This document shows positions 5,709-49,777 of a stretch of DNA of 64,000 nt, piece by piece. Made by a program: the position numbers and the translations under genes. The notes beneath the pieces are model-generated. The model was not told where the DNA came from and searched no databases. It worked only from the letters and a program-made list of their open reading frames with translations. The stretch covers positions 16,430,001 to 16,494,000 of the forward strand of contig NC_135253.1 of assembly GCF_964204865.1 (NCBI RefSeq). The letters run 5' to 3'. Origin of the DNA: Styela clava (Eukaryota). Position 1 is the stretch's first letter; every line of letters begins with the position of its first letter.

Positions 5709-5917
5709 ATTCAGATATTTGTGTATTTAGATTTCCCAGTCGCTTTATGTTATATAGTTCACATACAATATACCAATAATACAATGTCTGAATACCAGCC
5801 ACAATACAGTTACAGTATTCACTAGAAACACAGCTTGGAAATAACGCCGAACAGAATAACCATCAGCCGATGAAACTATGAAGAACGGCCAAGACCAGCG
5901 GGATACGTGATCGATAC

Positions 5918-6002
5918 TGACGTCACTAAGAAACAAATAGGAAATAGTCATGTGAATTTAAACTACAATCAGCCTCGCTTAAAATTTTCAAATACATGTG
6001 AC
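5918..6002. promoter_or_regulatory. Putative V-ATPase promoter motifs: CRE (TGACGTCA 5918-5925) and two M-box/CLEAR-like E-boxes (GTCATGTGA 5947-5955; CATGTGAC 5995-6002)
   Basis: Motif matches 210-300 bp upstream of the ATG. MiT/TFE control of V-ATPase genes is established in animals; function here is inferred. Confidence 0.45.
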
Positions 6003-6524
6003 GCATAGTCGTATACGTAAGGAAAATCACCTGAAAACGAAAAACGAGTCCCTATTAAATCAAAAACACCCCAATCGAACACCAATTCTTGCTGAGCTAC
6101 AGTTTTTTTTATCTGTATTTCATAAAAGTTTTCATTCGTTTTTGTTGTACAATATTTTTTGTATCTGAACTTATTCAAAGTTTTGTGTGCTTTGCAACAT
6201 TGACTAACTTATTCTGAATATTTGAAAGATCAGTTATTAATTTTGCATACATAAACTTACATAACACAGGAAGTGACAAATGATCAATGGTTACGAAGAG
6301 ACGAGCAATCCATAACTATCCCCAACAGGATTCGAACCCTCTTAGTAATTTGGTGGTAATGATAATTCGCTCCGCATTATATGGTTATTTCTATTTTAAC
6401 AACGGTCTTGTTTGACACATTTGCAGATCAAATACACGGAATTCAACGTTACAGATCTTCGAAGTTTTGGATATTTTATCGAATATACGACACGGGTCAA
6501 TGACTAGAGTTTCTACGACCACCG

Positions 6525-6538
6525 GTTACCATGGTGAT
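6525..6538. promoter_or_regulatory. Putative RFX X-box (GTTACCATGGTGAT) upstream of the WDR49-like gene
   Basis: Near-palindromic match to the X-box with one perfect GGTAAC half-site; the downstream gene belongs to a ciliary family. Confidence 0.35.
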
Positions 6539-7814
6539 GACCCGCAAGCTTCTCTGTGTAAATTTAATGCAGAATGGTTCAAACAATGAATTTATTTCTT
6601 GTTCTATGTTAAAATGGGGAAATGAGATGCTGGAGATTAATTTATATTCATAATACAATAATAAATATTGATACTAGGGGCCTATAAAGTGACTATGATA
6701 ATATTGATACTATGGGTCAGTCAGTTTATTAGGTACCCTATGTACTTTTCGTAAGGTTACCCTTACTGACTTAGGGTTTTCTATAATTATTTGGTAATAA
6801 ATTTGAAATAACCTAGTAAACTTTTTTCATCGCAACGAAAATTTCTATGAACATGCAATGTACAGTGGGAAATAATGGTATAATTGAAAAAATATTAAGT
6901 TATATGAAATATAGTCTGAAGGATTTTTTCAATTGTGAAGAACCTGAATATTCTGATATTGGTTTGATGGCATGGTTGAATCAGATAATCTCGCATCACA
7001 TATATAAGATATCAAATGCAACGACCCTATTCTTTAATGTATATTAGGGAAAAATCACTGCAGGCGTATCATTATTCTGACACACATACCAGCAGTCAAA
7101 ATAAATCGATAAATGCACCTCAACAACAATTACTGTTATTTTTTGAACAAAGGGTATAACCTATCTAAAACTTGCTCAAATGTGTGTTGCTGTGGATAAA
7201 ATAATTGTACAATACCCTTAAGGAATTAAAATGGTGACCAGGGTTATAGCATACAGTTTACATTCACTGATTTAAAGTATTTTTCTGAGCTAATCCTTAT
7301 ATGATAAATCATTCCTCATCTACCCTTCAATATGATAACCATGTAAAGAAGCCAACTAGCGTCACATGTCTGTATAAATGACCATACTACTTGTATTTAT
7401 CCAAAAGGATATATACTACACATTCATATTTTAGTCCAGTATGGTCTTGTGCATGTATCCTGTTTTCAGCATTGGTAATTTTGCAACTTTGCCTATATAT
7501 CTTGACATTACAGAATGAGTAACCATATACATACAAGTAATCAAAAGTTTATAGACTTTTCTGCAAAATGGTATTCAGATATTTATGACGCTTTAAAACA
7601 AGTACTGGGTATAGGAGGAAGCATTTTTTGTCCTCAGTATTGGTTGGGTTATATTTGTACTGACCAAGTCTACAGGATAACCCAAAAGAAACATGCTATT
7701 GAGATATCCTGACAGCAGAAATAGCGGCTCAGAAGGACCAAGTGTTTGACTATTTTGCGCAGCGGATGCTCATGTCTCTATTGTCAAGGAGGTAATTTGG
7801 AACATATTCTATAG

Positions 7815-29053: not shown

Positions 29054-29520
29054 CTAACAAATGTCCAAAAAAACAAACAAATAAATGATACTTATTAAAT
29101 CAACTGCAATATCTAATTCACTTTCTTCTGAATTGTTTTCGAAATCCACTATCTCGAAAATCGATTTTTCCTCTACAAGTTTACTGTGATTTTTGCAGTC
29201 AATACAAGAACAAAACTCTGTGCAATTTAAGTTGATTTTGGCACTCTTGCATAAATTATTTTGACTATTTTTCTTACACTTGCAGTTTGCCAACTCAAGA
29301 ACTGATTTAAAGGCCACATGCTTCTTCAGTGAATCATTGTTGGGTGAGGGAGTATAATCCTTATGTTTGCCAGTGTTAAATAGACGTGCCCTGGTATCAT
29401 TTACATTCTTCATATCCTCTTCATACAGTGAACAAACGAATTCCTCAGCTTTATTCTTAATGCCCCGTTAGCCTCAAAAGATCTTCATAGTTAAGAAAAA
29501 AAAATGAATTGAAAACCTCA
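29054..29520 (-). pseudogene. Academ-type transposase C-terminal remnant (tesmin-like CXC tail)
   Basis: NVNDTRARLF...PSPNNDSLKKHV...LELANCKCKK..NNLCKSAKINLNCTEFCSCIDCKN matches the recalled VNEARY.LF..LPPT.D.L..H...C.C...C.C....L.CTE.C.C tail; upstream sequence is frameshifted or deleted. Confidence 0.7.
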
Positions 29521-30624
29521 ATGAAGTCTCCAACATGAGTTTGATGGGCAGTTCCAATTGCACGAAGGGGTGCTTAAGTATTTCAATATGAATAGCCCAT
29601 CTAAGCTGTTTGCAACTATTATGATTCTCATATACCTTTACGCTTCAAGACTTCTTGTTTAATCCATTTTATAGCACTGATAGCAGCAGGGATTAGAGCC
29701 TGCGTTAGATCGGATTGGTGGAACATTGCCGTTTTCTTTTGCAGTACAGTATCTAAAATGAGGAAGAAAATCATATTTGGAACAAACAGCATGAGTGTAA
29801 AAATACCACTAAATACTAACCACTACCTTGAATACATGATGCATTTCATCTGATGTACTCAATGAGCGTATATATGCTCATTGCATGTACTACAGTCCAA
29901 CAGTGTTTGCATACCAGTACTAGAATATATCTACACTAAATTTTGATATAGGCCTATCCCAGTCTGAAATTCCCTATGACAGTATGAGTATGGACTATAC
30001 ACTACATCAACAGTCGGTCTACAACTTGATTTATCACCTCTCAATCGCTTTCAATGCTACTTCCTTTCCACTCCGGCATAACTTATCATTGCTTCCCATG
30101 TTCTTGTCGACTCAATGAATTTAGATTTAGACCAACCGAGATTAGTAAAATTGATTATTTCCTTCTCTTTCACACAAACGTGCATTACAGAAACAGCCAT
30201 TAATTTCTATTTCCAAATATGCTGTGGCCTATATAGTAGTATAAGTCTGCTGAATAGTCAAGAAGAGTCATTAAATTAATCATAGACATTTCATGCAAGC
30301 CAGAAAATATCGTTGTTTGTGACATATTATTCTAGGTCTAGCCTTCCTTGGAGTTACCCAACGACTAACATACGGAGTTACCGCACCCTACCTATTTAAC
30401 AACGTCTTATGAGCTAGTGCTCAACTAAAGATGCTATTTATGGTAAGGATATACAAGTGTTTAATATCTTACTTATACTTTTCAACACCTCCTTATAATA
30501 ACTGAACTAATAATAACTGAAAAAAATATGGAAAGGCTACTCAACGCAAAAGCGAGCAGTAATAGTAGTACATCTGATATCCACCCGACCACGCAACAGG
30601 GGTGATAACTTTTTTGTGGCTTTG

Positions 30625-30743
30625 GAGCCAGGCCACACAAAAGGGGCCAGGCCACGGAGAAATCGGGGCCAGGCCACGGAAAAATCGGGGCCAGGCCACG
30701 GAGAAATTGGGGCCAGGCCACAAAATATTTGGGGCCAGGCCAG
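30625..30743 (+). repeat. Left subterminal 22-bp tandem repeat (GGGGCCAGGCCACGGAGAAATC), 6 cores
   Basis: Period 22 (e.g. 30643, 30665); inverted counterpart at 48957-49076. Confidence 0.95.
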
Positions 30744-30874
30744 CGCATTCTTATTATTTTCATCTTGCACAGATGTACTAGTACCCATATTTGTTCAGTT
30801 ATATTTTGTTTATAGGTAATGTGGAAACTGCCAAACTGGTAATGTTAAGACATGTACGGTACCGGTGCCGGTAC

Positions 30875-31400
30875 AGGATAGAAAATGGAGCCACAGACTT
30901 GAGCAGTTCAGTAATATGGAGCCACACACAAATTCTGTTTTGAGGTGTGGATAAGTCTTATTTTTTGTGTGTTTAACAGGTCAGTAATGATCTTGAAGGT
31001 ACAGGCAAACCTTATTAGTGAAAAGAATACGATTAAATCACATTTAACTAAGAATTTATTGCCTGGAAATACAGGATGGAAAATGGAGCCACAGACTTGA
31101 GCAGTTCAGTAATATGGAGCCACACTCAAATTCTGTTATGAGGTGTGGATTAGTCTTATTTTTTGTGTGTTTAACAGGTTAGTAATGATCTTAAAGGTAC
31201 AGGCAAACCTCATTTGTGAAAAGAGTATGTTTGAATAGCATTTAACTGAGAATTTCTTGGCTGGAAGTACAGGATAGAAAATGGAGCCACACTCAATTTC
31301 TGTTATGAAAAGTGGATTAGTCCTATCTTTTGTGTGTCCAACAGGTTAGAAAAGATCTCGAAGGTACAAGCAAACCTTAATAGTAAAAAGAATCGAAATA
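30875..31400 (+). repeat. Left ~197-bp subterminal repeat array (~3 copies; further degenerate copies at ~32430-32700)
   Basis: AATGGAGCCACAGACTTGAGCAGTTCAGTAATATGGAGCCAC... units; reverse complement of the 47795-48945 array. Confidence 0.9.
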
Positions 31401-31490
31401 TATTTATATAATATATATTTAAGCGAAAAAATATTGCTTGGAAGTACTGCATAAAAAACACGAGACATTAGCCATAGTGCTATATTTATA

Positions 31491-32142
31491 TCGCCGGATG
31501 AGAACAGAAGGGGCCTAAGTCACATTTTTGCAAAATTCACTTTTTTCAATATTTTGGGGTTTTGAGCCATGCTCTACAAGTTGGTGGTCTTGAAATCCTG
31601 AATTTCTCAATAATAAAAATTTTAGGTGGACTTAGGACTGTGGAAGTTAAGAACAGAATGGGCCTAAGTCCAGCTAAAATTTTTAATATTATGAAATTCA
31701 GAATTTCAAGACCACCACCTTGTAGAGCATGGCTCAAAACCCTAAAATACTGAAAAAAGATAGTCCTAAGTTCCAATATGATGGGCATGAACATCAGAAA
31801 TGAAATGTCCGAAACTTACATCCCTAAAAATATTTTCAGTGCAACTTAGGCCTAAGTCACCTTGTTTTACCTTGCATCCCATACAAAAAAATTCAGAAGT
31901 TGTTGAGAACAGAATGGGCCAAAGTCCATTATGGGGTTAAAAAAGCAGGAAGGAATTGAAGCTGAAGTGCCAAAAATATTGATTACAAAGATATTCACAT
32001 CCACATTAAAATAATCAGAGCTCAGGGGTTTACTAAGTGTGAATATCTAGAAATTCAAAAATAAAAAAATTCCAAATTGTTTTTTGCGTTTTTCTCAAAA
32101 CTCAAAATTGTGACTTAGGCCTGTTCTGTTCTCATCCGGCGA
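31491..32142. mobile_element. MITE with TATA flanks and a long internal palindrome
   Basis: TIR TCGCCGGATGAGAACAGAA..GGCCTAAGTCACA at both ends; internal inverted repeat 31541-31760 with ~95-bp arms. Confidence 0.8.
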
Positions 32143-34974
32143 TATAGTCTGATATATATTTAAGCGAAAAAATATTGCTTGGAAGTACTGCATAAAAAAC
32201 ACGAGACATTAGCCATAGTGCTACTGTGCTTACCCGAAAAAAAGACCTAGCACGAATTTTAAAAATAATTTTAATATAAGCCCTCCCCTTAAAATAAGAC
32301 CAAGTCAATACCGTGAGATTTTTTTATCCCCCTTACACGTTTTAAATGATTGATAATGATCTATGTTTTGCAGTTGTTTTGAATAAGAACGTGTTATTCA
32401 TAAGTAAATAGATATTCTCTACTTTTTAATCATGTTTTTAATTATTTTTTTTTCATGGTTTTCAACAGGTTAGTAAAGATCTTCAAGTTACAGGAAACCC
32501 TAATAGTATGAAATCATGTTTGACTGTCTGAAAAGTAAATACTTTGAAATTTGTTGCCTGGAAGTGCAGTTTAAAAAGTGGATTCATACAGCGAGGTGAT
32601 TCGGGGACGCAATGTCTGAATGTTGTTGGAAGTGGATTAGTCATAGTTTTATTGCATATAACAGGTTTGTAATGACGGTTGAGTTACTTTACAACAATAG
32701 TCTTAGTACCACAAGATTTGTTTCTAACTTATCGACACCTTGTGCCTTTTTGGGGAATTAATGTTTTTTGTTCAGTATATATGCTGATATGAGTCATGAT
32801 CGCAGTGAAACAGATACTACTCGATAACTGAGGAATGTATACAAGAATTAGGCTGTAAGAAGCTGGTATCATATCAATTTGATCATAGATTATGAATAAG
32901 AAAGCTAATTTGTAGTTTACATTTACCAGGTTGGGAAAAATATTTCAAGCTTATCCCACTCAAACTATTTATAAGTAATACTCATATCAGACTGTATACA
33001 TTTAAGCCTAATATTAAAATGTATATTATTTATTCGGAGCATTCATATCAGATAACATTAGCTGGCGCACTGGTCTTTTTATTTAAGACGGGTTTTGGGG
33101 AAAGCTTTGGTTCACACTTGTATATTCGTTCGTCATTCAAATGGTTAGAGTAGAGATTTAGGTATATATTTGTTTTTGAGACTTAGTAATTTCCATTCTC
33201 CTATGTTTTACGGTTACGACAGAAAGCTAAAAATACTTATTAATATTCCTTATTTCCTGGGAATGTAACACATAACTGCATTTCAGAAAGTCCTTATATT
33301 TCTATATCCACCTGAAGCATGCATAACATATTTGTATTATTTTCTTGTGATGATTACTACCACATGCATAATTGGATCTGATTTCAGGGATTGTTTCAAT
33401 TGATAATGAAACCAGGAATCAAGCGAAAAAGTTTTACAATTACATTACAAAGATTAAATAGGATGGTAATATTTGGTATTATCTGCCTTGATCACATTAT
33501 TGTAACAATACCTGTACAGATGAGACCTGAATACAATCCCCATGGTTACATTTCAAGATTGTGTCTAATAGTCAAGTCTGAATTTTGTACATTTGTTTTC
33601 CTAAAATAAGGTTTGCAAGTTCTTTCACAATTTTTATACTGTCTTTGGAGAAAGAGAGATGATCATCAAATGGTGTTCCCTATTAAGCACTCTGTTTTTT
33701 ATACAAGTGTAAGACAATGTGAATTTTTTGCCACTATCGGTTTCATTTTTGAATATTGCCCAATCACTAATCATCATTGTAAAGAAATACATGTAATGCC
33801 TTTTGTATCACATGATAAAAAATTATTCAGTATAACTTTAACAAAAAACATAGTTTTTATGACATTTCAGGTGCTCACGTCGTAACAACATAAAAACAAG
33901 TATCCATGTTATTAATTTTGCTTCTCCAAAACATCGCGTACATAAAACAAAATAATGACGTAAAATTAGCAAGTGTGGTAATATGATTGATTCTGCATAC
34001 TTCAATGTAAGTTTATCGTATAGTTTATACTGTGCTTTATAGCAGGACATAGGTAAAAACGGAATAAAACATAAAAATTAGCCCATTCATTCGTTTGCTA
34101 ACCTGATGAGTTTTTGATAATCAAATGATCAATCAGGGATGGACCAAGCAGTCTCTAGTCGAATAAACATCATGTTAAATTTGAATTGATGATGATAAAA
34201 ATGATGTGATAAGATCTATGAAACAGATTCTGTTAGATAAATTTCATCTCATATTGTTGCTAACAACCGTGCCATAAAACCCCACTCCCATTTAATTTTA
34301 CGTTTTACCTGTATTCTCAAAATGGTGTGCAGGATCAAAAAGTATTTATTGGTGAAATTATGTATTTTGATTTCCAGTACTTTAAAATAATAAACCACTC
34401 AAGTCATCACGAATTTTAACATATTTTTTTGTTTTATAGCTCGGAGAGAAGAAATCAAATCATGGTGTCTGCTATGATGACAACAAAACGGACTTTACCG
34501 GTTTTGTATTGATACCTCAAGGTTAATATAGAAATTTGAGAAAATAGGCTCAAAACTACCAAATTCCCTTGAACCTCTGAACCAGTTCCAGTCTGGTGTT
34601 TGCAATTTTATTTTTGCATATTTTTCAATAAATGAAACAGGTAATCGCATGGATCTTGTATTCTGTAAGGGTAATTTATAACCGGGAGAAGAATATGTTC
34701 GTTCCCGTGGGAGTATTGGGATAAACAGTGGTTGGGCCTGCAATTTGTATGACAAATCTAAAACATCTTATAGTGTGTAAACCCCTGTCAATTGCATATA
34801 TCAGTATGTACTTTAAAACTCATTTGAGCCACTGGTGGAATTATTCAGGCATTGATTGATGTACACATGACGAGGTGATAAAGAAGACAGGTAATATATA
34901 TAAACTCTAATAATAATATGATATAAATAGACCCATTAATGAATCTATATTTATCTCTTTCTGAAATAATAAGC

Positions 34975-35170
34975 AGTTGGACCTGACAACATTATTTAAG
35001 AGTCATGTATGATATCCTATCGAGTTCGGTATTTTCCGTGATGCTTAAAAATGTGCTAGAGTGGTGCCCGTTTTCAAATCTGGTAACAAAAAGCATATAT
35101 CGAATTATAGGCCAATCTCAGTGCTCCCAGTAATTTCAACTGTCTTTGAAAAATTATTAAATAGCCGGTT
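34975..35170 (+). pseudogene. LINE (CR1/L2 group) reverse-transcriptase fragment
   Basis: GIFRDA*KCARVVPVFKSGNKKHISNYRPISVLPVISTVFEKLLNSRL: classic NYRPIS motif with an in-frame stop. Confidence 0.85.
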
Positions 35171-35450
35171 ATTATGTTTTATAGAAAAACACAATATCAT
35201 AACCAGATCTATAATGTACTAAGTTTCAGTTATTTAAAATTAATTATACAACAACACATATTCTCTGAACAAATTAACAATCGCAACAATATAACTTATT
35301 TCACTGAGTTTTGCCTGGTACACCAGAGCAGTACTTTATGTGTGATGTTCATGAGATGTGTATTACCGACATCTGCACATAGCCCAAATCTTATGACCCG
35401 GGGCATATTTTTTTCAATTATAAGTAAATATTTAAAATAAAATAATCACG

Positions 35451-35493
35451 CTGGCCTGGCCTCAGAGACACAAAAAAGTTACCACCCCTATTC
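35451..35493 (-). repeat. Internal third copy of the Zisupton terminus
   Basis: Revcomp GAATAGGGGTGGTAACTTTTTTGTGTCTCTGAGGCCAGGCCAG matches both element ends. Confidence 0.8.
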
Positions 35494-35780
35494 AAATTTC
35501 AGCCATTGTGAAGTAGGTTACAGCAAAGTAATTAATAGGCACCAGTTAACGCTACAGTAAAAAGACAATGAATGTGGTGAGGAATATAAATATCTAGATA
35601 TGGCAACCAGTAGGAATTTATCGCTCGCAAAAAAAATTTATCATCTAATTCTGCCGGCTGGTATTTGTGAGAAGCCAACTCACCACGGCAAGGTTCCAGC
35701 CTTTGAGTTGGATCTCTTTTTAAACAGAAGAAACCCAAGCATGGATAGGCAGATCGCCAATGCTTAGTAAAGAAACTGCT

Positions 35781-36010
35781 GTGGATGCCGTTGGCTGAAC
35801 AAAGTTCAGCTCGTCCGCCTTCTGGTAAACCAAGGGTCCCACTACCCAAAGAGGTACGTGTGGATGCCGTTGGCCGGATAAAATCCAGCTCATCCGCCTT
35901 TTGGTATACCAAGGGTCCCACTACCCAAAGAGGTAAATTACTTGTGGATGCCGTTGGCTGGATTGCTCCAGCTCATCCGCCTTTTGGTATACCAGGGGTC
36001 CCACTACCCC
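35781..36010 (-). repeat. Three tandem ~80-bp structured repeats in the putative 3' UTR of the Zisupton gene
   Basis: Units start at 35781, 35860 and 35944; constant flanks around a variable hairpin. Confidence 0.9.
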
Positions 36011-36055
36011 TAAAACCATGCTGTTCTTTTTGGCATGGCATGGTTGTTGATTTAA

Positions 36056-39000
36056 TTAAGCACTGCTTAATAAGCATAGCGGGCATCTCCATGATTTTTT
36101 TATTTTCACCCTCGCCTCCTTCTTCGAGTATTTTAGGCATTCTGAATGGAACCAGCGATCGCATGCATCACAACCAAGCTGTCAAACAAATGTGTGTGAA
36201 ATTTTTATCAAAAACATAATAGGAGCCCACTCATTTAGGATACCATCACAACAAGCAACATGATGAAATGATTCCAGGCACTGGAGCAGTGCAGGAATGA
36301 ATACAAAAGCTAACTCACGATATTGCCATCAGGTAGACATTACTAAGTGCAGCCCTTCATCTGGACAAATTCAGATACTACCAGGGCTCCCAAACTATTT
36401 TACCCCAAAGATTCGTATACAGAATCTCGGGATTACAGACGTGTCTTTCAGATAATATACCTAGCAGTGCGCCTAAATATATTTTAGTACATCTAACTTC
36501 AAAGTGTTATATATTGATAAAATAACCTTCGAAAGTATAAATAAAATCAGTAGAAGGAATTCCTCATATATCTAAGTTATCGAGTTGAGATACGTTATTA
36601 TTTACGTAAAAATACGAGTTTCAGTATTTCCAGTTTGAGATTAAGCCATACTTTTAGGTACAATTACTACGGGAGTCACTTTCCTAGTCACCGAGTTATA
36701 GGACTAAAATAAGGAAAATTGAAATAAAATTATAACCTGGTGCACATACTTCTGGAGCACCAAATTTCCACCCTTCTTGCGACCCTCTCCAAACTAAGCC
36801 CATTGGCGCCATACCCTAGATACGCCACTGACAAATATTAATTTATAATGTAATTTTAAAAAATAAATGTGAGAACAAACCCAAGTTCCATGAGGCGTCG
36901 CAGTGCCACACATGCTGCACACATCGATCATATCTAAGAACATTGAGGTAAATATAAATAGAATGAACACACAAGTTCACACTAGACCAACGGTTCTCAA
37001 CCAGTGGGCCACTGCTGGCCACAGAGCTAATGATAATTGCTAGTTTAATTTATGTCAATATTGCTTTGATTTTAGGCTGCTTTCTGCTATGGCTTAAACT
37101 TTCATTCTGAATATTTAAGTGAAAGTGTCCATTTTCAAACAAACATCTTGATTTTTCTTGTAGTTTTCCCCTTGCAACAAAAATCGACCATGAACGAAAA
37201 AAGGTTGAGAACCACTGCAGTCAGTTGAGGCTTGCTTCCTCCACCATCAATTTCATGCATCTGAGACTAATCGTATATTTCAATACCTGACATTTCCAAG
37301 ATCTCTTCAGCTATTTGTAACCTGTATCTTTTAATATCTTCTAATGTCGACTGAAAAGTAACTCTATCAAAACTATTAAGCAGTAAGCTCTCTGCAATCT
37401 GAACAAAACATTTAATATTATGAATTATAATATACCTATTGAAAATGGCTCAAAATTTTCTATAACCTCACCTTCATGACAAATACCCCGCAGCTGGAAC
37501 CATCAGTTTGTATTGGATGTTTAATTTTTCCACTTTTGAAACATGTTATTGACTCCTTAATTCCCTCACCCTCTCTTAACTGCAGGAATTCACTTGAAAT
37601 AAGAAAATCGGGGTAAATAATGGCAAACATAAATTACTGTAATCAAATCTGTCCTATTGTTTGAAAATTTATTATACCTAACGCTCCTTTCAGCATCTTG
37701 GCTTTCTTCTAGGTTGCTACCGACCGGATCCACTAAATATAATATCCGCCCAGTAATGTTGATCACCTAACAAAAAAATTTCAAATAACTTTCAAGTAGA
37801 TAATCAAGAGAATGAAAAGCGAAGATGGCAATACCAAAAGTTTCCAATGATTATCATCCACGTTCCATATTCCGACAATAATTTCATAGGCCGAGAATGA
37901 TATCTGAAAATAAACAAGGATCATTTACAAATATGGGATATTTATGAGCAAAAACCTTCATCACAAAAGAGCTCAAACATACATCAAATACTGCAACTTC
38001 GTTGATTAGCTCTATTTTATCTACCAAAATTTTTCAAAAGAAAAGAAACAGACCTTCGAAAGTAATTGACGGGAAAGAACAGGTCTGTTTCTTTCCAATA
38101 TATTTTTGGTCAAAAAGGAGTCTAATATGTAGACTTTCTTTGTGCATCTTGCCGCCAATATTGATAAATATATTTCGATTGCCTATAACGAGAAAATTTT
38201 TTTATTTTAGTAAAATCATACGAACCCATGGAGTCTACATAGCAAATGCTTATCTTTTGATTTGTAAGAATTCAGATTTGTTTTACAGTCATCAATTAGT
38301 ATAAGCTATTTATTATATTCAGCAAGAAAGATGAAATTTGTCAAATACATAACATTTGGGGCAAAGCGCTAGCCCATTAAAATTTTCTTCATTGATATAT
38401 TCAAGTGCAAATGAAATTACTTACTTCATCCATAATCCAACGGTGGGGTTTCAAGGAGGTAAATCCTTTCAGCCAGATTTTTCGTTGAGCATGCGTTGCA
38501 ATTATGATTTCAGGTAAATCATCTTCGTCTTTCTTGATAAGCAACCACATAGTTTCTGCATTCGAGGGTATTTTTCTAATAACAATTAAAATTCCTATGA
38601 ATCAAAACTGTATGTCAATTAACGGGGACAGTTGCCACATTGAATGAGGAAATTTGCTAACTTTGTAACCCTAAGGCAAATTTGATATATGAATGATGGT
38701 GAAAAAATTTGATAAAATATAAAACTTAATAATTTTACTTTTTAATTTCTAATTTTGTAGAGTTTCCCAGAATGTCGTCTTTCATCAATTCCTCCTCACA
38801 CTTCTCTAGTAAAACTTCAGCTACCTAAAATTCATATTGACAAGTAATGAACCAAATGTACAAGTAAGAAAATAGTGCAATGGAGCATTTATTTCAACAT
38901 CAATTGTAATTTTATAACAGACAAAATAAACTACTGACAATGAATTTTAGTCAGTGTTATGACTTACATAAAATTCAATGAAAAAATAAACAAAAAGCAA

Positions 39001-42000
39001 TTACTATGGCATTTTGTGAAGAAAGTTGGTGATCAGGAGTACGAAGCAGACGCCGGTCTGTAAACAATCAAAATATATTTATAAAGAAACATGCATTTTA
39101 TGTGTATTTTATGCACATCAAACAACATTCAAGAATTTTCTCCTTTCCTCACAGAGAACTAAAATCAAAATTTAATCAAATACATGCTAAGAACTTTTTG
39201 AACCAGAAATAATTTGGGATATGAAAATATATATTAAAAAATTATGAATCAAAATTGGATCAAATACGGTACATGCCAAGATGAAAAATATATATACAGG
39301 GTGTCCAAAAAATTTTGCCTCAAGTTCATATTAATAATAAATAAAAATTTCATAAAAAATAAAATTCATTGTATGATAAATGAGAACAACAAAGACAAAG
39401 AAATTTTAAATTGTTATTACTATAAAATCGGGCGAAATTTTTTGGACACCCTGTATATAAAAAATTATCACTAAAATTTCCTCAATCTAGCAACTGTCAT
39501 GTCATTTTTTATGGTTAACCTTGAGGGAGTGGGATCGCAATTCCTCTTGCATCAATCGTCACACCACCACATGTTTTTTCCATTACATTCATGATAGTTT
39601 TATTTATCCTCACATTCTGGAGGTGCATAATCAATCGACTCATAAATATGAAATTGATAGTATCCATGTTGCAAAGAGAGTACCTGTGAAGTAATCAAAA
39701 TGACATTAAAAATCATAACTATATTAAGATTACAGCAATTCACAGAATCATATTTTCAGAAACATTTACGTAAGCCAGGGGTCGGAAACCTTTTTCGACA
39801 AAATCTGCTAAATTTTAACTGCAAAATTCTGCCTTGTGCCGACCAAAATTAAAAGCAATGCTTTGTTAAATAATAAACCACTCAAACATATACAGACAGA
39901 CTCACTATTCTGGAAAATATCAGTCCGACAAATAGATTTGAAAACCTTTTTTATTCTATATCAGTGACACTTCTACTGCTGCATTACCGCTAATAGACAT
40001 TTTTACATTGGGTTTATATTTTGTAATTTTCAAAGAAATACACAAACTACGGGTTTCATCCCTCAGGCTACTCCTGTTACGAGACTTAAACAAGTTCATA
40101 ACTGAGAACAGAGATTGACAAGCATATGTAGATAAAAACATTAAATGAACACCTAGTTTCATCAGATAATTCAGAGTTTGAAACTTCTTATCTGAAGGAG
40201 AATGATCTTGTTTCTGATACCTCGCTCGCGTGCCGAATAAATGGGCTCACCCCTGACCAAAGCCAATAAAAATGTTTTGTCTCATTCCTAATTTACCTGT
40301 CTCGGGCCATTACAGCATTTTGCTGTTCTGCTACACTTGAGTTTACGTCAAGCATGCAATTCCGAAGATCTCGAAATGACCTTTCAGGTCCTTTCTTTTT
40401 AGATTTAGTATGAAACCTGTCGAGTAGGCTGTAATACTTTTCAGGATTTGCATCTGGGTCTATTTCTACTTTTTTTAACAAGCCCTCCTTTTGTAGTAAT
40501 AAATTTTTTTTGCTCCACTCGTATAGCATGCCTTTATATGGCTCAAACATGTCTGGGAGGCGATTTTCACCATGATGAGCAACCTGAAAGAATCAATACT
40601 TCTGATCCATATGTTATTGCAACTAAGATAAACCAACATAAACTTTCACACTCTATGCTTCATAATATAATTTCAAGTTCTAAACATTGATACTGAGAAT
40701 TTTAAAATCCATCTTCAAATATTGAGAGATTGGATTTCTGAATTGAGAAATAAACATTCCGATTTGTAACCTCTCACTGAAAACTACCTGTGATGCAATA
40801 TCCGAAATGTATACATTTGGACGTTGTATAAATGACAATAATCCATCGACATGGTCCCTTGCCGATTCCTGTCGAAGAGTGTATTTCATATACACACACA
40901 CGCCATGTGGACATCTAAAATGAACGATGCCACCTAGGAGTAGAAAGATATATCTTCAGGCATATTGTTGGTACAAAATATGAGTACGCAAGTGTTACAA
41001 GGGCATTCTGAAACCTGACACTTTATCATATGGCCAGTTATGCACATTCATGTATACTAAACTTCACAAAAGGAGCTCAATATGTCATAGATTTCCGCCC
41101 TTGTTCATAATATTTCTTCTGAAATATAAAAAATATGATATAAATATTTCAAGACAAAATTGTACCACCACATTTCTTCATGACCTTGTACATTTTCGGA
41201 TGTATATCTTTAAAAAGTACTGATTCATGCAATCTGTTTATGATCTGTTCTTTATTTCCTCCATCACTCAATCCAATTCTACAACACAGGTCCTTCAGTT
41301 TCGCAAGGCTCTGAAAGTCCCAACAATTTTTTTTCTTTTTCTACACTCCTGAAACTACACTTCAGGAAACAACAAATGATAAACAACAAATTGTGCATAT
41401 CTCAAATCTACTAAAACGCAATATATTTACAATTGATCCTATCATTTTGCTTCACTCAGCTCATCTTATCCCCAGCCCAGTACATATCCATAATATACTT
41501 CTTACTAATATCACATTCATCCTACTCCATTAGCTATACTCACATTTGCTTTGTCATGAAGTATGTTCATGATTTCTTCATGGGTGACGGTTCCATCTGA
41601 TTCTTTTTTTTTATCAGGGGCTTCAACCAAAACACCCTTTTTATATTCAGTGTTGAGGACTACGCCTCTTGATTTTTCGCCAATCCATGGTACTATTGTA
41701 TCATATCCAATCTCATTTTTCCATGGATTACATTGTGATCCTGAATACAAGCTTATTGCTATAATATCATGAGTATAAAAAAAACAAATACAAATCATAC
41801 CATAAATTCCACGCCCCAGAATCTCCATTTGATAGTTTGACCAGGATCTTTGGCAGTCAACTTCATCCCCTTGGGGGATAGAACTTTGTGGAGTTTTTGC
41901 TAAAATAACATTTATTTTTAGCCTCAAAGTTTTATAATCAATGAATAACATTGAGCCAAAATCTAAAAAGGTGCCGAAATTTCTAACTTTCGCAATGCAG

Positions 42001-45000
42001 ACTTATCTAATCATTTGTCCAATTTTTTTTGCTATGATTTTTAATGCCTTATTCAATGCCCTTTATTTAAATGCATATTGCACTGTCATAGTGCAATCAT
42101 ATTTACATGGTTAGGCTAAAGAATGGTGCTTCTATATACCATATGTCCGTATGTTGATTTCCTATTGTTAGAATCAAATTACAGCATAACATTGCACGAT
42201 AGCATAAACAAACAAAAATGCATAGCAAAATACATGTGTGGCAAGTTTATTATAGTGCGAGGGGGTAGATAGTAATGTAAAATACAAAGGTTACATCTAC
42301 TATTGTGATTCAATGCCTGGTGCAATTAAGAGTGTGAGTTACCTTCTCGGACACATGTGTTCTTCCAATTGCCGTCTCCAATCAACACCTTGGGATTAGA
42401 TCCACATTTGTAACATACGAAATCATAATCAATATCGAGTAATGCACAAAAGTGATAAAAACCATTTCTTATTGTTGTTTCTTCCACAGAGTCATCGAAC
42501 AATGTCCTTAGACTAGTACCAACAGATATGTGATTCTGGAAATGGAAAAAGATTTCTCATTACCCTTGAATACGAAAAACATTTGGCATCTGGAAATATA
42601 TATTATGAAGCAATTGATGTGGTACATCTCTAGTGGATAATATAGTTGCAAATTATCAGATCTGGAATTTTTTGCAATTCACTGTTTTATGTTATGCATC
42701 TACGAACAAATGTAAATAAAATTAATTTGTGGCACTTTTACATGATTAAGATTCTATTAAATTGTATCTATTTAAGTAATTATCTCAGTTAATTATCAAT
42801 CTAATTATAAGTATAATTTTATTATCATTTTGTATGGGAATTCATAGGAGTAATCATGATCATAATATCACAACTTTTTTCAGGACAATAACATGACTGA
42901 CATCTAAGACACACAGCAGTATATTAGATATTTTTTAGGTATGCAACCGGTAAATAAATGGAAAAGGTTGGCAAAATGGATGGCACCCTATACACAAGGT
43001 TTACTCACAAGTAAGGACTATGGGCAATTAAAATAACAGTTGATAAAACAAAATAGAAAACCTACTTCCACTCCTTTCATCAAATAGACACATAGCTTTA
43101 ATGAAAGAATCGTTCTATTATTGAAGTTATGAAATCCACTTTGGTACTCTTGGAATCTAACAATCAATCCACATGACACACATTTTTTATTCATTATGGT
43201 AATTCCTGAGATAAAAAAAAAATATGAAATTCATAAACTTTGATTACCAGAGTCATCAAGCAAAGTACGAAAATAGTTGAACAATCTTCACAATAGTAAT
43301 TTTACAAGCACTGTATTAGTAGTAATCTCACCATTCCACTTCTGACCCAGACTGTACACTGTTGCCTTTTTCCTTTCAAATATCATCAAATCACCCTGGC
43401 AGTGAGGGCAATGATTTTCAGGAGGACAGAAAATATCAGGTGGGGATAATTCACTCAAATGCGTTATCATTCTTGACGAATGATCGAAAGGTATTTTTTT
43501 AGACATCAAATACTTCATTGAAAGGACATCCATCTCAGAAATTGTTCGGGTACTGGGAATACTGAAATAAAAATCAACATAAATAAGATTGAAGGGTCAA
43601 AATGTCCAACACCTGATATTTATCACTCATACCTGGTTTTCTTGAACAGATCTGCATCATTCGATGCTAAATTCCACTTGCATAAAATTTCGTGAATGCA
43701 TGTCCTCGTTTCATTAGAAATGGGACATGCACAAGACCAGCGACAAATATCTTGGTCGAATGTTACTCGAACTCGACCTAACTTCGAATAATACTGCGCT
43801 GTTTCCTCAAAAACGGAAAAGTATATTTGTCTATCTTTATACCCAAGACTAGCGAAGTCAAGACGAACAGCAAGGGGACAACATTTATCATTGCAAGCAT
43901 TCAACAAATTTAAGCACAGCTCTTCCCTCTCTGCACCTATCATATTTATTCGCCTCAAATATGATAGTGCAGAAATTTGCAGAGTGTTGCCGGTACTTGT
44001 TACCATTTGTGCATTATTTACAGCCTCTAGATGGACACACTCGAATCCGGGATTTTGCGAATTTTCCATTGCATGAAGACAATTACTATTAGAACACCTA
44101 CTGACACCAAGTTTCAAATGCTTCTGAACATGAATTGGTGCCAGCAAACCGGCTGACTGAGCAACCATGTAGATTCCATTTGCGGAATCAACACATATGC
44201 ATGGATGTTTTACTTGTATAATTTTATGTTCTATCTGTCCATGATTTCTCAACGAAATCAAGTTGACAAAACACTTTCCACATATACGGCATTGATACAT
44301 AGCACTTGCATCTGAAAATACATAAATTTCAAAACATTCAGTCATGTTACCACAATGACATGCCTCAAACTTATTTCAATGACACTGACAATGAGAAGCC
44401 TTCACATAAATAGTATAAAACCCACAATTCTCATTTAAATATGTAATTCTTTTTTAGTTATATAAAGCCAGCGTCTGTAAACTTTTGTTGTTCGTGGGCC
44501 AAAATCAAAGGCTGCAAGTCATTGGCGTGCTGCACATGTTTTTTGGAAAGTTAAAAACCGAGGGAATAGCCAATGAATCATATTTTTTCACACAGATTTT
44601 AGTTATATTTCGAGCAACGTGCGAAGACTGATCATTTGAATATTTTATGCACCATTAAACCATTTGCACTCAGCATCAACTTTTTGCGTTCTATTTCCAT
44701 TGGTCTAATGACAATCAATTTATAGGCCCATTAAACGAATGATTGTGAATTATATACTTGTTAGGTTATAATATAATTTATCGTCTCAAAACAAATTCTG
44801 TTACGTAAAGAATATAATCTTCGATACAGTTTTTTGTTTATATAATTCAGTAAAGCGTCACGGGTCGGATTATATTGTTCTTGCCCGCGGGCCGTAGTTT
44901 GCCCACCCTTGGTATGAAGTCTAATATAACAGCTTGATTACTATTCAACTAGCAACTTGAAAAACAAATGCCAAATATAAATCAATCACCATATTCAATT

Positions 45001-45756
45001 TCCTTCTTTGTTTTTGCATAACCATACTGTTCCGGTATGACCGAAAACAATGTATTTTCTTGTAATCTCCTTTTTTTGAATCCATCGCTTTTCAGGCCGC
45101 TTTTTTGATTACATTCCAATTTTGAACTACAGCATTTCCCTCAATTCAAAATATCAACATGAATAATTCACGGTTATAAATATAATAACATTATCAGGCT
45201 GTGTATAACATTGTCAATAATTTTATAATAGATAAGGGATGTATTTCTGAAGTAACTTGCAATTCAACACAAACTCCGGTCTTATACCAAACTCCAGTCT
45301 TATTACTGAATATATCACCAAAATTTGATTCTAATGAAAATAGAAATATTCTATTTGATATACATATATTACCTCTTTGAGAAGATAAGTGACTTTTCAA
45401 ATAAGCACTTCTTCCATACATTTTAGGGCAGTAGGGACAGTGAAAATGACTTCTTTTTTTTTCTGACTCACTTTTGCGAAACAATGCAAAACACTTCCGG
45501 CGACATGGCAAGATAAACACTGAAAAAAAACGGAAATAAGTTAGTTGGTGTTCAGTATTATAAACAAATTAAAATTTATAAAACTCGCCAACTGACCGTT
45601 AGAAAATGAAATGGCATTATTTAAATGCATCACTTCTAAATGCTTCCCCAAATGCACAATCGCAGTTTTTGGATGACAAAGAGGACATTCACTTCCACTC
45701 GACAACTTCTCTAGAATTTCTGATTTGGACCCTTCGAATGCTCCATTATATTCCAT
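36056..45756 (-). CDS. Zisupton/HMGXB3-related KDZ transposase: C2H2 fingers, SWIM, CxC, SAP, KDZ core, Ulp1 (C48) protease, PHD; ~1190 aa
   Basis: Phase-compatible GT-AG exons: 45597-45756, 45373-45519, 43633-44311, 43332-43561, 43066-43205, 42343-42535, 41801-41899, 41544-41740, 41166-41310, 40788-40933, 40297-40583, 39520-39683, 39005-39057, 38739-38824, 38425-38575, 38054-38182, 37835-37903, 37678-37766, 37472-37592, 37287-37398, 36881-36933, 36056-36178 (sum 3573 nt; two extra exons near 44990-45330 are possible). Motifs: WSCACP..TCIH (SWIM), CYKCGSNPKVLIGDG, LAKLKDLCCRIGLSDGGNKEQIINRL (SAP), CPHG..ESARDHVD..YISD, DRFH, NSSVAEQ, NHW..VDP..QTDGSSCG, CSMC..WLGCDACDRWFHSEC..WRCPLC. Confidence 0.88.
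36988..37217. mobile_element. hAT MITE in a Zisupton intron
   Basis: CAACGGTTCTCAACC ... GGTTGAGAACCACTG TIRs. Confidence 0.65.
39297..39453. mobile_element. Tc1/mariner MITE in a Zisupton intron
   Basis: TA-flanked TIRs CAGGGTGTCCAAAAAATTT ... AAATTTTTTGGACACCCTG. Confidence 0.85.
39776..40255 (-). mobile_element. Non-autonomous hAT with a transposase dimerisation-domain remnant, in a Zisupton intron
   Basis: CAGGGG...CCCCTG termini, TSD acgtaagc/accaaagc (6 of 8). ORF 39956-40162 MFLSTYACQSLFSVMNLFKSRNRSSLRDE matches the hATC motif. Confidence 0.75.
44469..44911. mobile_element. hAT MITE in a Zisupton intron
   Basis: Left CAGCGTCTGTAAACTTTT..GGGCC, right GCCCGCGGGCCGTAGTTTGCCCACCCTTG, degenerate 8-bp TSD. 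Confidence 0.6.
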
Positions 45757-47794
45757 GTCCAAACTTAATATTTTGCATCCAACCAACCTGATACAGTCTG
45801 ACAGTGATGCAGGTGTATCGGCACAACAAAATAAAATATTAGAATGTATAACTTTACGTAAAATACCAACACTGAAACAAAATTGAAGTATTGGATATCA
45901 GCATATATATATATATATCCAGTACGGAAGTATTTTACTATTAGTTCGATACCGGCTTCAAAAACTAATTTTGAAACAGCAAACACAATGACAGAAAAGC
46001 TGTCATTTGTAACCGTATTTTCAGCTGCAATCTTGCACTTTACGGTCTGCATCAGCAGATCAGTGATCAGGCCAGCAATAAATAAAATATAAGTTAAATC
46101 CTTTATCCAATTTTCACAATCAAACTAGCAAGCAATATACCTCCCTCACATTAAGTAATACATTCAGACATTTGTAATGAGTACCGGTAAGTGTTCGAAT
46201 ACATCATTTTACTGGGTTGTAACATACCTGCATACGAGAGAGAGATTTATTGATTCGTCAACCAAAACAAATATGAATATGAAAGCATAAATACAAATAA
46301 ATAAACACTGTTTATGGTAAAGACTGGAGGGAGCGATACGACCATACGGTCATCCAAGTCAGCTCCCCCCAAATTCACTGTTATGCATAAGATTCACAGG
46401 TATTGGATGACTATGTGTGTAACAGCTAATTATAGAGTATTATACACTTGAATAATTGTAAAAAGCACAATTACAAGGGGCTAATGATTTCAGTTAGTTA
46501 TCACGCTCATATGATCATTGATCCATGCATATTAAGAAAAAATTACTAGGGGTCTGGAGAATTACTAATATGGAGAACAAATTGTGGTAGTTATACCCAA
46601 TGAGCGTATTTGGATAATTATTATTGTAAATGAAAAGGAATATAAATGAAAAAAATTAAAATATTGGATTTACGAAGATAGGATTAACTTTGGATCATGA
46701 AAAACAATTAAAACACAATGTGAATATGAAGATCAATATCAATGACTACTGAAAGGGATTTTTCAAAGTACAAGAAGGGGGTTTGTAATCAAATATCCAA
46801 ATAACTAATATCATTAATTAACAAGGGATGAAAAATAGAACTCTGAAACCAAATTGGGGTCTGTAGAGATCTAAGTTCTAGTGTCTACAGGGGGTGTACT
46901 GTGGAACGGGTGTACCCATTTAAACATTTTCATCAAACAACAAAAATCTCAAAAGGTAATTGAATATATCAAATATAAAGGAAACTTCCAGCAATATTAA
47001 ATTTTCAAATAGTTCAAATACCTATAGCAGTGCTATTGATAGGAAGTGGAGCTAATGTATTTGTGTTAATTAGCCAAAATATAGTAAAATTTTTACAATC
47101 AGGGATGTAGAGGGATGAATATTTAAACTCAAACTTCACTTACTATATTGTGAATAGAATATTAATTTGAGTTTGAAAATTGTCTATTGATTTGAAGGAT
47201 ACAAAGAATTGCGCTTTATTTGATAGAAAAAAAATGGATGGAATTCAATATTATGCTAATCCAGCCACTATCTGGAAAAACTATTTCAAAGTTGGGTCAT
47301 ACATGAAAGGAGGATTATATATATGTAATCGAATATTACAACATTATATAGAATATCCACATAACTGATTTGGTTGATTATATTTTTGCAATATTAGACC
47401 AGCGGAATTAATCAGTTGACAACTTTTGAGTTGTTGCATCAATATTAAGCCAAGAATAAACTACGGTACATCATATACAACTAATTTCAAAACAAGTTAT
47501 TCAGTTGAAACTTTCTGAGAAACTAATTCAGAGGATACAAGTTCAAAGTGCGATCATACATGAAATGAGAGTTATATACAGTATTTATATTCAAATATTA
47601 CAATATTATGCAGACCACCAGCAGAAATGATTTGATTGAATTTTATTCCTGCAATGTAGGACCATCAGAAATACTCTTGTGGCAGATTTACAAATTGTTA
47701 AATTAATATTTGATCATGATCCACTACAAGGAGAACAACCAGTTACAATACTGATTATGTTATTCAAAGTTCCCAACTTGCAAAATGTACCGGT

Positions 47795-48945
47795 ACCGGT
47801 ATTTCCAGGCAATAAATTCTCGGTTAAATGTGATTCAAGCGTATTCTTTTCACTAATAGGGGTTGCCTGTACCTTCAGGATCATTACTAACCTGTTAAAC
47901 ACACAAAAAAGAAGACTAATCCACATCTCAAAACAGAATTTGAGTGTGGCTCCATATTACTGAACTGCTCAAGTCTGTGGCTCCATTTTCTATCCTGTAT
48001 TTCTAAGCAATAAATTCTCGGCTAAATGGGATTCAAGCGTATTCTTTTCACTAATAAGGTTTGCCTGTACCTTCAAGATCATTACTAACCTGTTAAACAC
48101 ACAAAAAATAAGACTAATCCACTTCTCAAAACGAATTTGAGTGTGGCTCCATATTACTGAACTGCTCAAGTCTGTGGCTCCATTTTCCATCCTGTATTTC
48201 AAAGCAATAAATTCTCGGTTAAATGTGATTCAAGCGTATTCTTTTCACTAATAAGGTTTGCCTGTACCTTCAAGATCATTACTAACCTGTTAAACACACA
48301 AAAATAAGACTAATCCACTTCTCAAAACGAATTTGAGTGTGGCTCCATATTACTGAACTGCTCAAGTCTGTGGCTCCATTTTCTATCCTGTATTTCTAAG
48401 CAATAAATTCTCGGCTAAATGGGATTCAAGCGTATTCTTTTCACTAATAAGGTTTGCCTGTACCTTCAAGATCATTACTAACCTGTTAAACACACAAAAA
48501 ATAAGACTAATCCACTTCTCAAAACGAATTTGAGTGTGGCTCCATATTACTGAACTGCTCAAGTCTGTGGCTCCATTTTCCATCCTGTATTTCAAAGCAA
48601 TAAATTCTCGGTTAAATGTGATTCAAGCGTATTCTTTTCACTAATAAGGTTTGCCTGTACCTTCAAGATCATTACTAACCTGTTAAACACACAAAAAATA
48701 GGACTAATCCACTTCTTAAAACGAATTTGGGTGTGGCTCCATATTACTGAACTGCTCAAGTCTGTGGCTCCATTTTCTATCCTATACTTCCAGGCAATAA
48801 ATTCTCGGTTAAATGTGATTCAAGCGTATTCTTTTCACTAATAAGGTTTGGTTGTACCTTTAAGATCATTACTAACCTGTTAAACACACAAAAAATAAGA
48901 CTGATTCACTTTTCATAACAGAATTTGAGTGTGGCTCCATATTAC
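47795..48945 (-). repeat. Right ~197-bp subterminal tandem array (~6 copies) with a 393-bp dimeric higher-order structure
   Basis: ATTCAAGCGTATTC anchors at 47833, 48031, 48228, 48424, 48621, 48818; identical spurious ORFs 393 bp apart. Confidence 0.95.
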
Positions 48946-48956
48946 TGCATATCACC

Positions 48957-49076
48957 CTGGCCTGGCCCCAATTTCTCCGTGGCCCGGCCCCGATTTCTCC
49001 GTGGCCTGGCCCCGATTTCTCCGTGGCCTGGCCCCGATTTCTCCGTGGCCTGGCCCCATTTTAGTGGCCTGGCCTC
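48957..49076 (-). repeat. Right subterminal 22-bp tandem repeat, 6 cores
   Basis: GATTTCTCCGTGGCCTGGCCCC units; inverse of 30625-30743. Confidence 0.95.
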
Positions 49077-49777
49077 AAAGCCACAAAAAAGTGACCACTC
49101 CCTCTCCGACCACGGGGGCTCCACCTACAGCTGACTAATTTGCTTGTTACGTCATGCAGAAGTCTGCGTTCATTGGCCCATGATACCGGAAAAGTAGAGA
49201 AAATAGGACAGATGGTAACACATATTTGTTGTAGTAAAAGCGTCTTTTCTGTAAAACGTGCAACTTTTGGAAGTGGAAACAAGGCAATATTTGTTATTAA
49301 ATTTCTAAGAAACATTTTAAAATCATTTTCAGGTAGTTACCTTATGTGCTCTACGAAACTGAAAGATGAATGACCTCGGCTCGCGGCCTATTTTTGATTA
49401 CTCTTCGAACGCGACGCGGGCTAAGATAATGAAGACGAGGACCACATCTGAACCGTGAACCGATTATATTAATTGAAATTATTTTTTTTAATTTAAGCTA
49501 GGTAATAAAGTAAATCCTAACCCTACGTGGAAATCTGTCCAATGCAAAAAATTTCAATTCGTGCGTCACCATCATGCTACTGCTGATTGGCAAATGTTAC
49601 GGATATGAATAAGGAAGTTGAAGCTCGCGGGGGACATGCAAACAGAACTACAGATTCGTGGTCTGGCCTGTTGTTTCGCACTTTCCAGTGACACCCTCTC
49701 GTCGCAGCGTCGCGAAGCCTTGCAGCTTCCAGGACTTATTTTATTTTTAATTCGTATCCCTTTTCAATCAATGGTCG

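Follow-up and report, generated by a model that had tools for sequence, protein, structure and literature searches.

Is the 18.5-kb stretch at positions 30594-49106 of a 64,000-nucleotide window of the Styela clava genome an intact and recently mobile transposon, and does its gene, which lies on the minus strand, encode a single protein joining a transposase to a SUMO protease and a PHD finger, as an initial annotation made from the sequence had proposed? The window, i.e. the whole stretch of DNA that was analysed, is C4:16430001-16494000 of the 377-Mb assembly (~33% G+C) of this solitary ascidian, and positions without a contig name refer to it. Our answer is that the stretch is probably one of two near-identical 18.5-kb Zisupton-type class II transposons that moved very recently and carry the gene for a putative transposase of ~1200 amino acids (aa).

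The limits proposed at the outset proved exact, with the same 8-bp direct repeat, CGACCACG, at both flanks. The ends are built as follows.

30586-30593, no strand: left target-site duplication CGACCACG, 8 bp; one copy in paralogous empty sites
30594-30743, plus strand: left terminal inverted repeat, tip CAACAGGGGTGATAAC, which is common to eight other elements
30627-30742: 22-bp subterminal direct repeats, left, within the left terminal inverted repeat
30872-31291: 197/198-bp tandem repeat, 2.1 copies, inverted with respect to the array of the right arm
47799-48947: 197-bp tandem repeat, 5.8 copies, right arm
48957-49106, minus strand: right terminal inverted repeat, whose plus-strand tip ends in GTGACCACTCCCTCTC
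48958-49074: 22-bp subterminal repeats, right
49107-49114, no strand: right target-site duplication CGACCACG, 8 bp; one copy in paralogous empty sites

Inward from either end, the order is inverted arm, 22-bp subterminal repeats, 197-bp tandem array. The inverted arms are imperfect (30599-30743 against 48957-49101: 145 nt, 89% complementary), and the outermost 14-16 nt show partial complementarity, yet are conserved across copies. We infer that the 22-bp subterminal repeats are likely the binding sites of the transposase.

A DNA search of the same genome revealed a second gene-bearing copy on contig C9 (~13779290-13797190). This copy is colinear with 35347-49107, with 7 mismatches over 13,761 bp (99.95% identity), while its left arm is 98.9% identical. 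Its first and last nucleotides are the same, its flanks are unrelated, and it is bordered on both sides by a duplication of its own, CAGCGAGG; the unrelated flanks and differing duplications rule out segmental duplication as the origin of the two young copies. The terminal 287 bp recur at no fewer than 40 further places in the genome (at least 40), and seven complete relatives of 5.4-8.7 kb display the same asymmetric tips, each with its own perfect 8-bp duplication. All nine elements with shared termini thus have perfect 8-mer duplications, and all nine duplications are different. In a comparison of six of the seven shorter relatives, none contained the gene; they are made up of arms and tandem arrays, with 96-99.6% identity among themselves. 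Several non-autonomous elements match the tip of the 18.5-kb element at 100% over their first 60 nt. The empty site was examined on paralogues of the repeat that hosts the insertion, rather than on alleles; in these paralogues the flanks abut across the insertion point, where a single CGACCAC(T/G) is found. Given the exact ends, the copy-specific duplications, the young relatives and the paralogous empty sites, the element has transposed recently, with an 8-bp staggered cut.

The reconstructed gene comprises 21 GT-AG exons (3603 nt, 1200 aa) with no internal stop in either young copy, and the two predicted proteins differ at 2 residues, both conservatively. Same-phase alternative donors would give proteins of 1185-1207 aa. 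Of the 22 exons and ~1190 aa suggested initially, the stop-free GT-AG frame held, and our model is essentially the same, an exon-for-exon match being impossible without the exon coordinates of that first model. The exons are listed in the order of transcription.

45597-45756, minus strand: exon 1, start codon at 45756; RefSeq match
45373-45519, minus strand: exon 2, C2H2-like finger; RefSeq match
44990-45139, minus strand: exon 3; RefSeq match
43633-44311, minus strand: exon 4, C2H2 finger and conserved N-terminal domain, SWIM-like CxCx(n)CxH; RefSeq match and 320 relatives
43332-43561, minus strand: exon 5, first part of the CxC4 cluster; RefSeq match
43066-43205, minus strand: exon 6, second part of the CxC4 cluster; PF18717
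42343-42535, minus strand: exon 7, LIGDG with the candidate first catalytic Asp; RefSeq match, Asp column 22/29
41801-41899, minus strand: exon 8, transposase core; RefSeq match
41544-41740, minus strand: exon 9, transposase core; exact match to XP_077967989.1
41166-41310, minus strand: exon 10, SAP domain; Ciona orthologue, paralogous family, PF02037 at 21.8 bits
40788-40933, minus strand: exon 11, YISD with the candidate second catalytic Asp; Ciona, LOC144425590, paralogous family, Asp column 17/20
40297-40583, minus strand: exon 12, DRFH and NSSVAEQ with the candidate catalytic Glu; Ciona 57/95 identical, Glu column 18/21
39520-39683, minus strand: exon 13, conserved linker; acceptor 39683 as in RefSeq, frame shared with Ciona and Clavelina
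38425-38594, minus strand: exon 14, putative C48 start, RWIMDE matching the W-L-N-D motif; acceptor predicted
38054-38182, minus strand: exon 15, putative C48 N-terminal helices; junctions predicted
37835-37903, minus strand: exon 16, putative C48 catalytic His, DDNHWKLL; junctions predicted, homologue alignment
37678-37766, minus strand: exon 17, putative C48 catalytic Asp, LYLVDP; donor uncertain, homologue alignments preferring 37629-37638
37472-37592, minus strand: exon 18, putative C48 oxyanion Gln and catalytic Cys, QTDGSSCG; PF02902 at 12.3 bits, paralogous family z 6.5
37287-37398, minus strand: exon 19, helix after the putative C48 catalytic Cys; junctions predicted
36881-36933, minus strand: exon 20, first CxxC of the PHD finger; weak donor, same-phase alternative at 36815
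36056-36178, minus strand: exon 21, C-terminal two thirds of the PHD finger and stop codon; PF00628, paralogous family z 9.2

Phase compatibility of GT-AG junctions is by itself weak evidence for a gene model. For alignment we used our own protein-to-genome spliced aligner, which reproduces the RefSeq model of this locus: XP_077967989.1 (692 aa, LOC144411704, 39600-45756) maps exactly as ten GT-AG exons, and exons 1-9 match RefSeq exactly. Spliced alignment of the Ciona orthologue adds 41310-41166, 40933-40788 and 40583-40297, followed by the acceptor at 39683, so that exons 10-13 are supported by this orthologue, by a second RefSeq model (which uses the exon 11-12 junction) and by a paralogous family. 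Exon 13 was extended to 39520 because Ciona and Clavelina conserve the stretch. In the tail (39520-36056) the distance of the homologues and the small size of the exons preclude a clean spliced alignment, and the junctions of exons 14-20 were placed with the help of motif anchors and a model of splicing and coding that had been trained on exons 1-12. Within the 41%-identical sister family described below, recognisable conservation of tail exons is confined to the Cys exon and the PHD exon, and older copies of the element on C5 hold too few differences per small exon to delimit exons. That a single 21-exon mRNA encodes a protein of ~1200 aa is thus a prediction from sequence.

The joined spliced protein was translated so that its frame, stops and motifs could be checked; domain scores were taken per exon. 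All the KDZ and Ulp1 motifs named initially lie in frame: in the 1185-aa model LIGDG is at 553, YISD at 755, DRFH at 817 and NSSVAEQ at 843, followed by the C48 motifs NHW at 1015, VDP at 1032 and QTDGSSCG at 1078, in the order of the family. The candidate catalytic columns are conserved (LIGDG Asp in 22/29 sequences, YISD Asp in 17/20, NSSVAEQ Glu in 18/21). A HMMER search of the full library, with the 250-aa open segment of the exon 4 region as query, retrieved 320 relatives; among them are two S. clava RefSeq proteins (one per young copy) and others from Clavelina, Ciona, amphioxus and numerous fishes. The fish relatives (Polypterus, Sander, Lucifuga) match exon 4 with E-values of 1e-12 to 1e-17, in sources that carry no Zisupton label.

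The Pfam profiles fell into three groups, with PF18717 (CxC4) and PF00628 (PHD) above their cut-offs, PF02037 (SAP) and PF02902 (C48) below, and PF18758 (KDZ) without a match. The CxC4 scores were 27.8 bits for exon 6 by itself and 37.6 bits for the RefSeq protein of the locus (cut-off 26.9), and the domain is present in 26 of 36 long relatives. SAP on exon 10 came just below its threshold (21.8 bits, cut-off 23.9). For SWIM there is no Pfam match despite a CxCx(n)CxH pattern at aa 346, the C, C, C and H ligands of which are invariant in the 36 relatives. The PHD finger is complete, as had been claimed: PF00628 scored 35.7 bits on the last exon alone (profile positions 14-47, cut-off 24), the full C4HC3 pattern spans exons 20-21, and the domain is kept in Clavelina and the paralogous family. 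As to the protease, three relatives have C48 regions that fall on the exons where they would be expected, and their His, Asp and Gln-Cys motifs find their counterparts there (spliced alignments: z 7.9, 5.8 and 4.2 against shuffled controls), and the S. clava motifs align to the same motifs of an amphioxus relative that is itself a 50-bit Pfam C48 match.

The fold was evaluated on the Ciona orthologue (1002 aa), whose identity with the S. clava protein is 50-60% over the core exons. Its AlphaFold model, built from a 36-sequence alignment, had a mean predicted local distance difference test score (pLDDT) of 72, with the core mostly above 85. Comparison by VIA-align with 48,161 chains matched Ciona residues ~450-872 to DDE transposases and integrases: the top match was the ISCth4 transposase (Z 9.6, 213 residues aligned, root-mean-square deviation 3.9), followed by Tn5, Mu, TnsB, retroviral integrases, piggyBac, Hermes and the P element. 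Residues 228-334 align to ZSWIM8 (Z 5.7). In the ESM Atlas the nearest neighbours of the Ciona core were HMGXB3 clusters at 0.96 (206/256 features), with KDZ clusters at 0.83-0.89; these we take as leads only.

Several results weigh against an intact gene for a Zisupton transposase fused to C48 and PHD. RefSeq splits the gene into truncated products only, the 692-aa model and a separate 130-aa fragment. The former skips exons 10-12 (578 nt) and stops at 39600, the early stop following from the frame shift that this skip causes; the latter (LOC144425590, 40293-40889) uses the exon 11-12 junction and then runs on into the intron. The tail splice searches gave several different open chains, so that alternatives to the chosen junctions of exons 14-20 exist; because of these chains, and because mini-exons are over-predicted at low intron penalties, the tail junctions are reported as predicted. 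The best single-exon score for PF02902 was 12.3 bits (cut-off 20.7), the domain being split over 5-6 small exons. A Foldseek search of the PDB with the whole 1002-aa Ciona model found nothing at E <= 0.001. Finally, PF18758 matched neither the exons nor any of the 36 long relatives, fish proteins included; genome-wide it found nothing, which is uninformative as control genomes were equally silent. Since PF18758 misses the fish relatives too, we do not read the KDZ profile result as a negative: the profile may be unable to detect this lineage, or the lineage may fall beyond its coverage. As an observation beside the exon skip, a Clavelina RefSeq protein also lacks the exon 10-12 region, yet in frame, and the form without the second half of the catalytic core may be an isoform.

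On balance, the 8-bp duplications, the inverted ends, CxC4, the SWIM-like motif, SAP, the DDE/RNase-H fold of the Ciona orthologue and the HMGXB3 neighbours in the Atlas led us to file the element provisionally as Zisupton-type, in a comparison that covered relatives other than the type protein G3KL21. The Zisupton/KDZ identity first proposed is therefore upheld by these features and by the multi-exon gene, with no match from PF18758. Likewise, the proposed fusion of transposase, SUMO protease and PHD finger is supported by the C48-like motifs, the PHD finger and a Clavelina fusion protein, while the one mRNA that would join them is predicted and the RefSeq models are truncated. What the initial annotation had observed is thus confirmed, and its interpretation partly supported.

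Could the element be structurally complete and no longer autonomous, giving rise to truncated products only, with its last jumps catalysed in trans by another Zisupton lineage? We regard this as unlikely, although the truncated RefSeq models would fit it, and a candidate lineage is at hand. Protein searches revealed that several Zisupton-like lineages coexist in the S. clava genome, among them a sister lineage of five near-identical copies with 41% aa identity and intron positions colinear with those of this gene (exons 2-13, the catalytic-Cys exon and the PHD exon).

C1:23277251, C14:17686714, C18:1506334, C4:377624, C8:11761084: copies of the sister lineage

The C1 copy lies ~6 kb from a terminus that is ~80% like that of the present element. 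Since only 2 copies carry an intact gene, against dozens of non-autonomous elements, the latter could be moved by the sister lineage with its ~80%-alike ends, a further point that counts against the gene as their driver. However, both copies keep the 3.6-kb spliced frame open and differ by two conservative aa changes; several non-autonomous elements share the first 60 nt of the tip without a mismatch; and Gnomon models of transposon genes are often fragmentary.

A different question is whether C48 and PHD might form a separate second cargo gene or transcript, and not the C-terminus of the transposase. Neither annotation nor homologue alignment bridges exons 13-14, where the intron is ~925 nt long and the acceptor weak, and the Ciona orthologue ends without C48. 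On the other hand, Clavelina XP_076799422.1 unites a Zisupton N-terminus, C48 and PHD in one chain; the pairing of transposase and C48 recurs in amphioxus, Clavelina and two other relatives (CxC4 or SAP fused to C48); and the frame from exon 13 onward is kept without start codon context or promoter. A second gene is very improbable, and we retain the fusion protein as the preferred model. Among the relatives examined, the PHD finger occurs in Styela and Clavelina only.

A domesticated host gene, or one on its way to domestication, would account for the intact frame amid repeat-filled introns and arms, but this notion is already contradicted, and deserves next to no credit, given the two copies, 99.95% identical and on separate contigs, each in unrelated flanking DNA and with an 8-bp duplication of its own, the intact ends common to young non-autonomous relatives, and the insertion inside a repeat whose paralogues are empty.

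Older copies provide some indication of past selection. Three degenerate copies, 91-95% identical, lie less than 0.5 Mb apart on C5, at ~0.95, 1.21 and 1.40 Mb. A 4.6-kb insertion at the equivalent of 41697/41715 is common to two of them, which are for that reason considered segmental duplicates, not transposition products. Sorted by codon position, the differences of the older copies concentrate at third positions (49 versus 23 and 28; 38 versus 25 and 24; 44 versus 26 and 29 at the others), hence part of the divergence arose under selection on the protein. Further Zisupton-like sequences are a lone copy at C4:10149338 (36% aa identity) and three loci (C6:7925347, C19:14077214, C5:3611110) that seem to hold intron-poor versions, their frames of 1242-1588 aa being uninterrupted.

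How might such an element work? From its N-terminus the predicted protein would present C2H2 fingers, a SWIM-like motif, CxC4, a DDE/RNase-H core with an inserted SAP domain, C48 and PHD. We propose a cut-and-paste mechanism, based on the fold and its conserved acidic residues together with the ends and the duplications of the element: the transposase would bind the 22-bp subterminal repeats, bring the two ends together, cut the element out and insert it by way of a staggered cut of 8 bp. The same protein, or a protein of the sister lineage, may move the 6-kb non-autonomous elements in trans. More speculatively, the C48-PHD tail may work at the level of chromatin, by influencing the choice of target or by opposing SUMO-dependent silencing. 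One conceivable version, purely conjectural and in our estimation quite unlikely to be correct, is a counter-silencing device in which PHD recognises one particular state of histone H3 and the protease removes SUMO from the factors by which heterochromatin is established over transposons. NEDD8 and other modifiers are also substrates of C48 members. If it were true, such a tail would enable an element of low copy number to remain active in the germ line, and the C48-PHD combination in two tunicates would be a lineage-specific invention atop an older Zisupton-Ulp1 pairing.

Zisupton is one of the least studied DNA-transposon superfamilies, and to our knowledge no animal Zisupton transposase has been reconstituted. 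The S. clava locus offers clean material for biochemistry, with two 99.95% identical gene copies, exact ends and paralogous empty sites, while the young non-autonomous elements define minimal ends. It is also relevant to transposon activity in a tunicate that is invasive and open to experiment, and the fused protease and PHD finger give a concrete handle on why transposons carry Ulp1 domains.

The remainder of the element, between the left tandem array and the gene, contains the following features.

31488-32146: nested miniature element, ~660 bp, with its own 44-bp inverted ends, in both young copies
32432-34494: non-coding arm, common in inverted orientation to the 6-kb non-autonomous relatives
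34775-35346: 572-bp segment, replaced by 18 bp in the C9 copy, with a weak reverse-transcriptase-like fragment inside
35780-36009: 79-bp tandem repeat, 2.8 copies, directly 3' of the stop codon

As both young copies hold the ~660-bp miniature element, it predates the last jump; its family, with at least 40 genomic copies at 93-97% identity, is young and abundant. Open segments of the non-coding arm gave no Pfam match. The 572-bp segment was considered as a new insertion and rejected as such: because an old C5 copy also carries it, it is ancestral and was lost from the C9 copy.

With regard to the surroundings, the insertion host is a high-copy repeat (30050-30593 and 49107-49390) that ends ~284 bp to the right of the insertion; a first look gave 735-948 candidate copies, and the 40 that were scored are 84-96% identical. 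Just left of it, on the minus strand at 29057-29467, a 137-aa cysteine-rich open segment (several CxC and CxxC) may belong to the host-repeat element. Among the non-autonomous relatives that share these termini, the one at C18:14281700-14290750, flanked by a separate 8-bp duplication (TAAGTTTG), harbours a nested Ty3/gypsy-type retroelement with open reading frames at 2027-3613 and 3610-7476 of that C18 stretch, which encode a gag zinc knuckle and a pol with protease, reverse transcriptase, RNase H and integrase.

How does the element compare with known systems? Platyfish Zisupton (G3KL21) resembles it in inverted ends, 8-bp duplications, a large multi-exon gene, recent activity and KDZ-class cysteine clusters; the S. 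clava element differs in its tunicate host, in the PHD finger that follows the protease, and in long arms with 197-bp tandem arrays and 22-bp subterminal repeats. The 2012 Zisupton paper (Mol Biol Evol 29:631) reportedly lists SWIM, SAP and an Ulp1-type protease. Vertebrate HMGXB3, the nearest language-model neighbour of the Ciona core, would fit the Zisupton descent that the initial annotation ascribed to it, as a lead only; unlike the S. clava element it is a single-copy host gene without ends or duplications. Among plant elements, Kaonashi-type MULEs and some CACTA transposons carry C48/Ulp1, long suspected of a role in chromatin or silencing. They belong to other transposase superfamilies with other duplication lengths, the protease is usually a separate or captured gene, and we know of no PHD fusion among them.

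Zisupton genes are multi-exonic and encode up to ~1400 aa, and relatives have been published from lancelets, sea stars, mussels and nematodes (PMC9297572), so the initial remark that structurally complete invertebrate copies are poorly described is partly out of date. The Zisupton architecture described as canonical consists of a KDZ domain, CxC4 and SWIM (PMC11343200), and fungal KDZ elements such as KDZx1 of Cryptococcus deneoformans (PMC11343200) share CxC4 with the present protein, which has a SWIM-like motif besides; fungal KDZ proteins match PF18758, whereas the S. clava lineage and the 36 long relatives do not. Zisupton makes 8-bp duplications and, of the KDZ lineages, is the sole one for which inverted ends and duplications are well characterised; TET/JBP-carrying Zisupton, Kyakuja and Dileera elements likewise combine 8-bp duplications, large size and a chromatin-related accessory enzyme (PMC12730594). 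In fungi, however, the accessory is a separate TET/JBP dioxygenase gene, while in S. clava it would be a C48 protease and a PHD finger fused to the transposase. Knowledge of the superfamily is unchanged in kind by the S. clava element, which is a good specimen of an already known kind of transposon.

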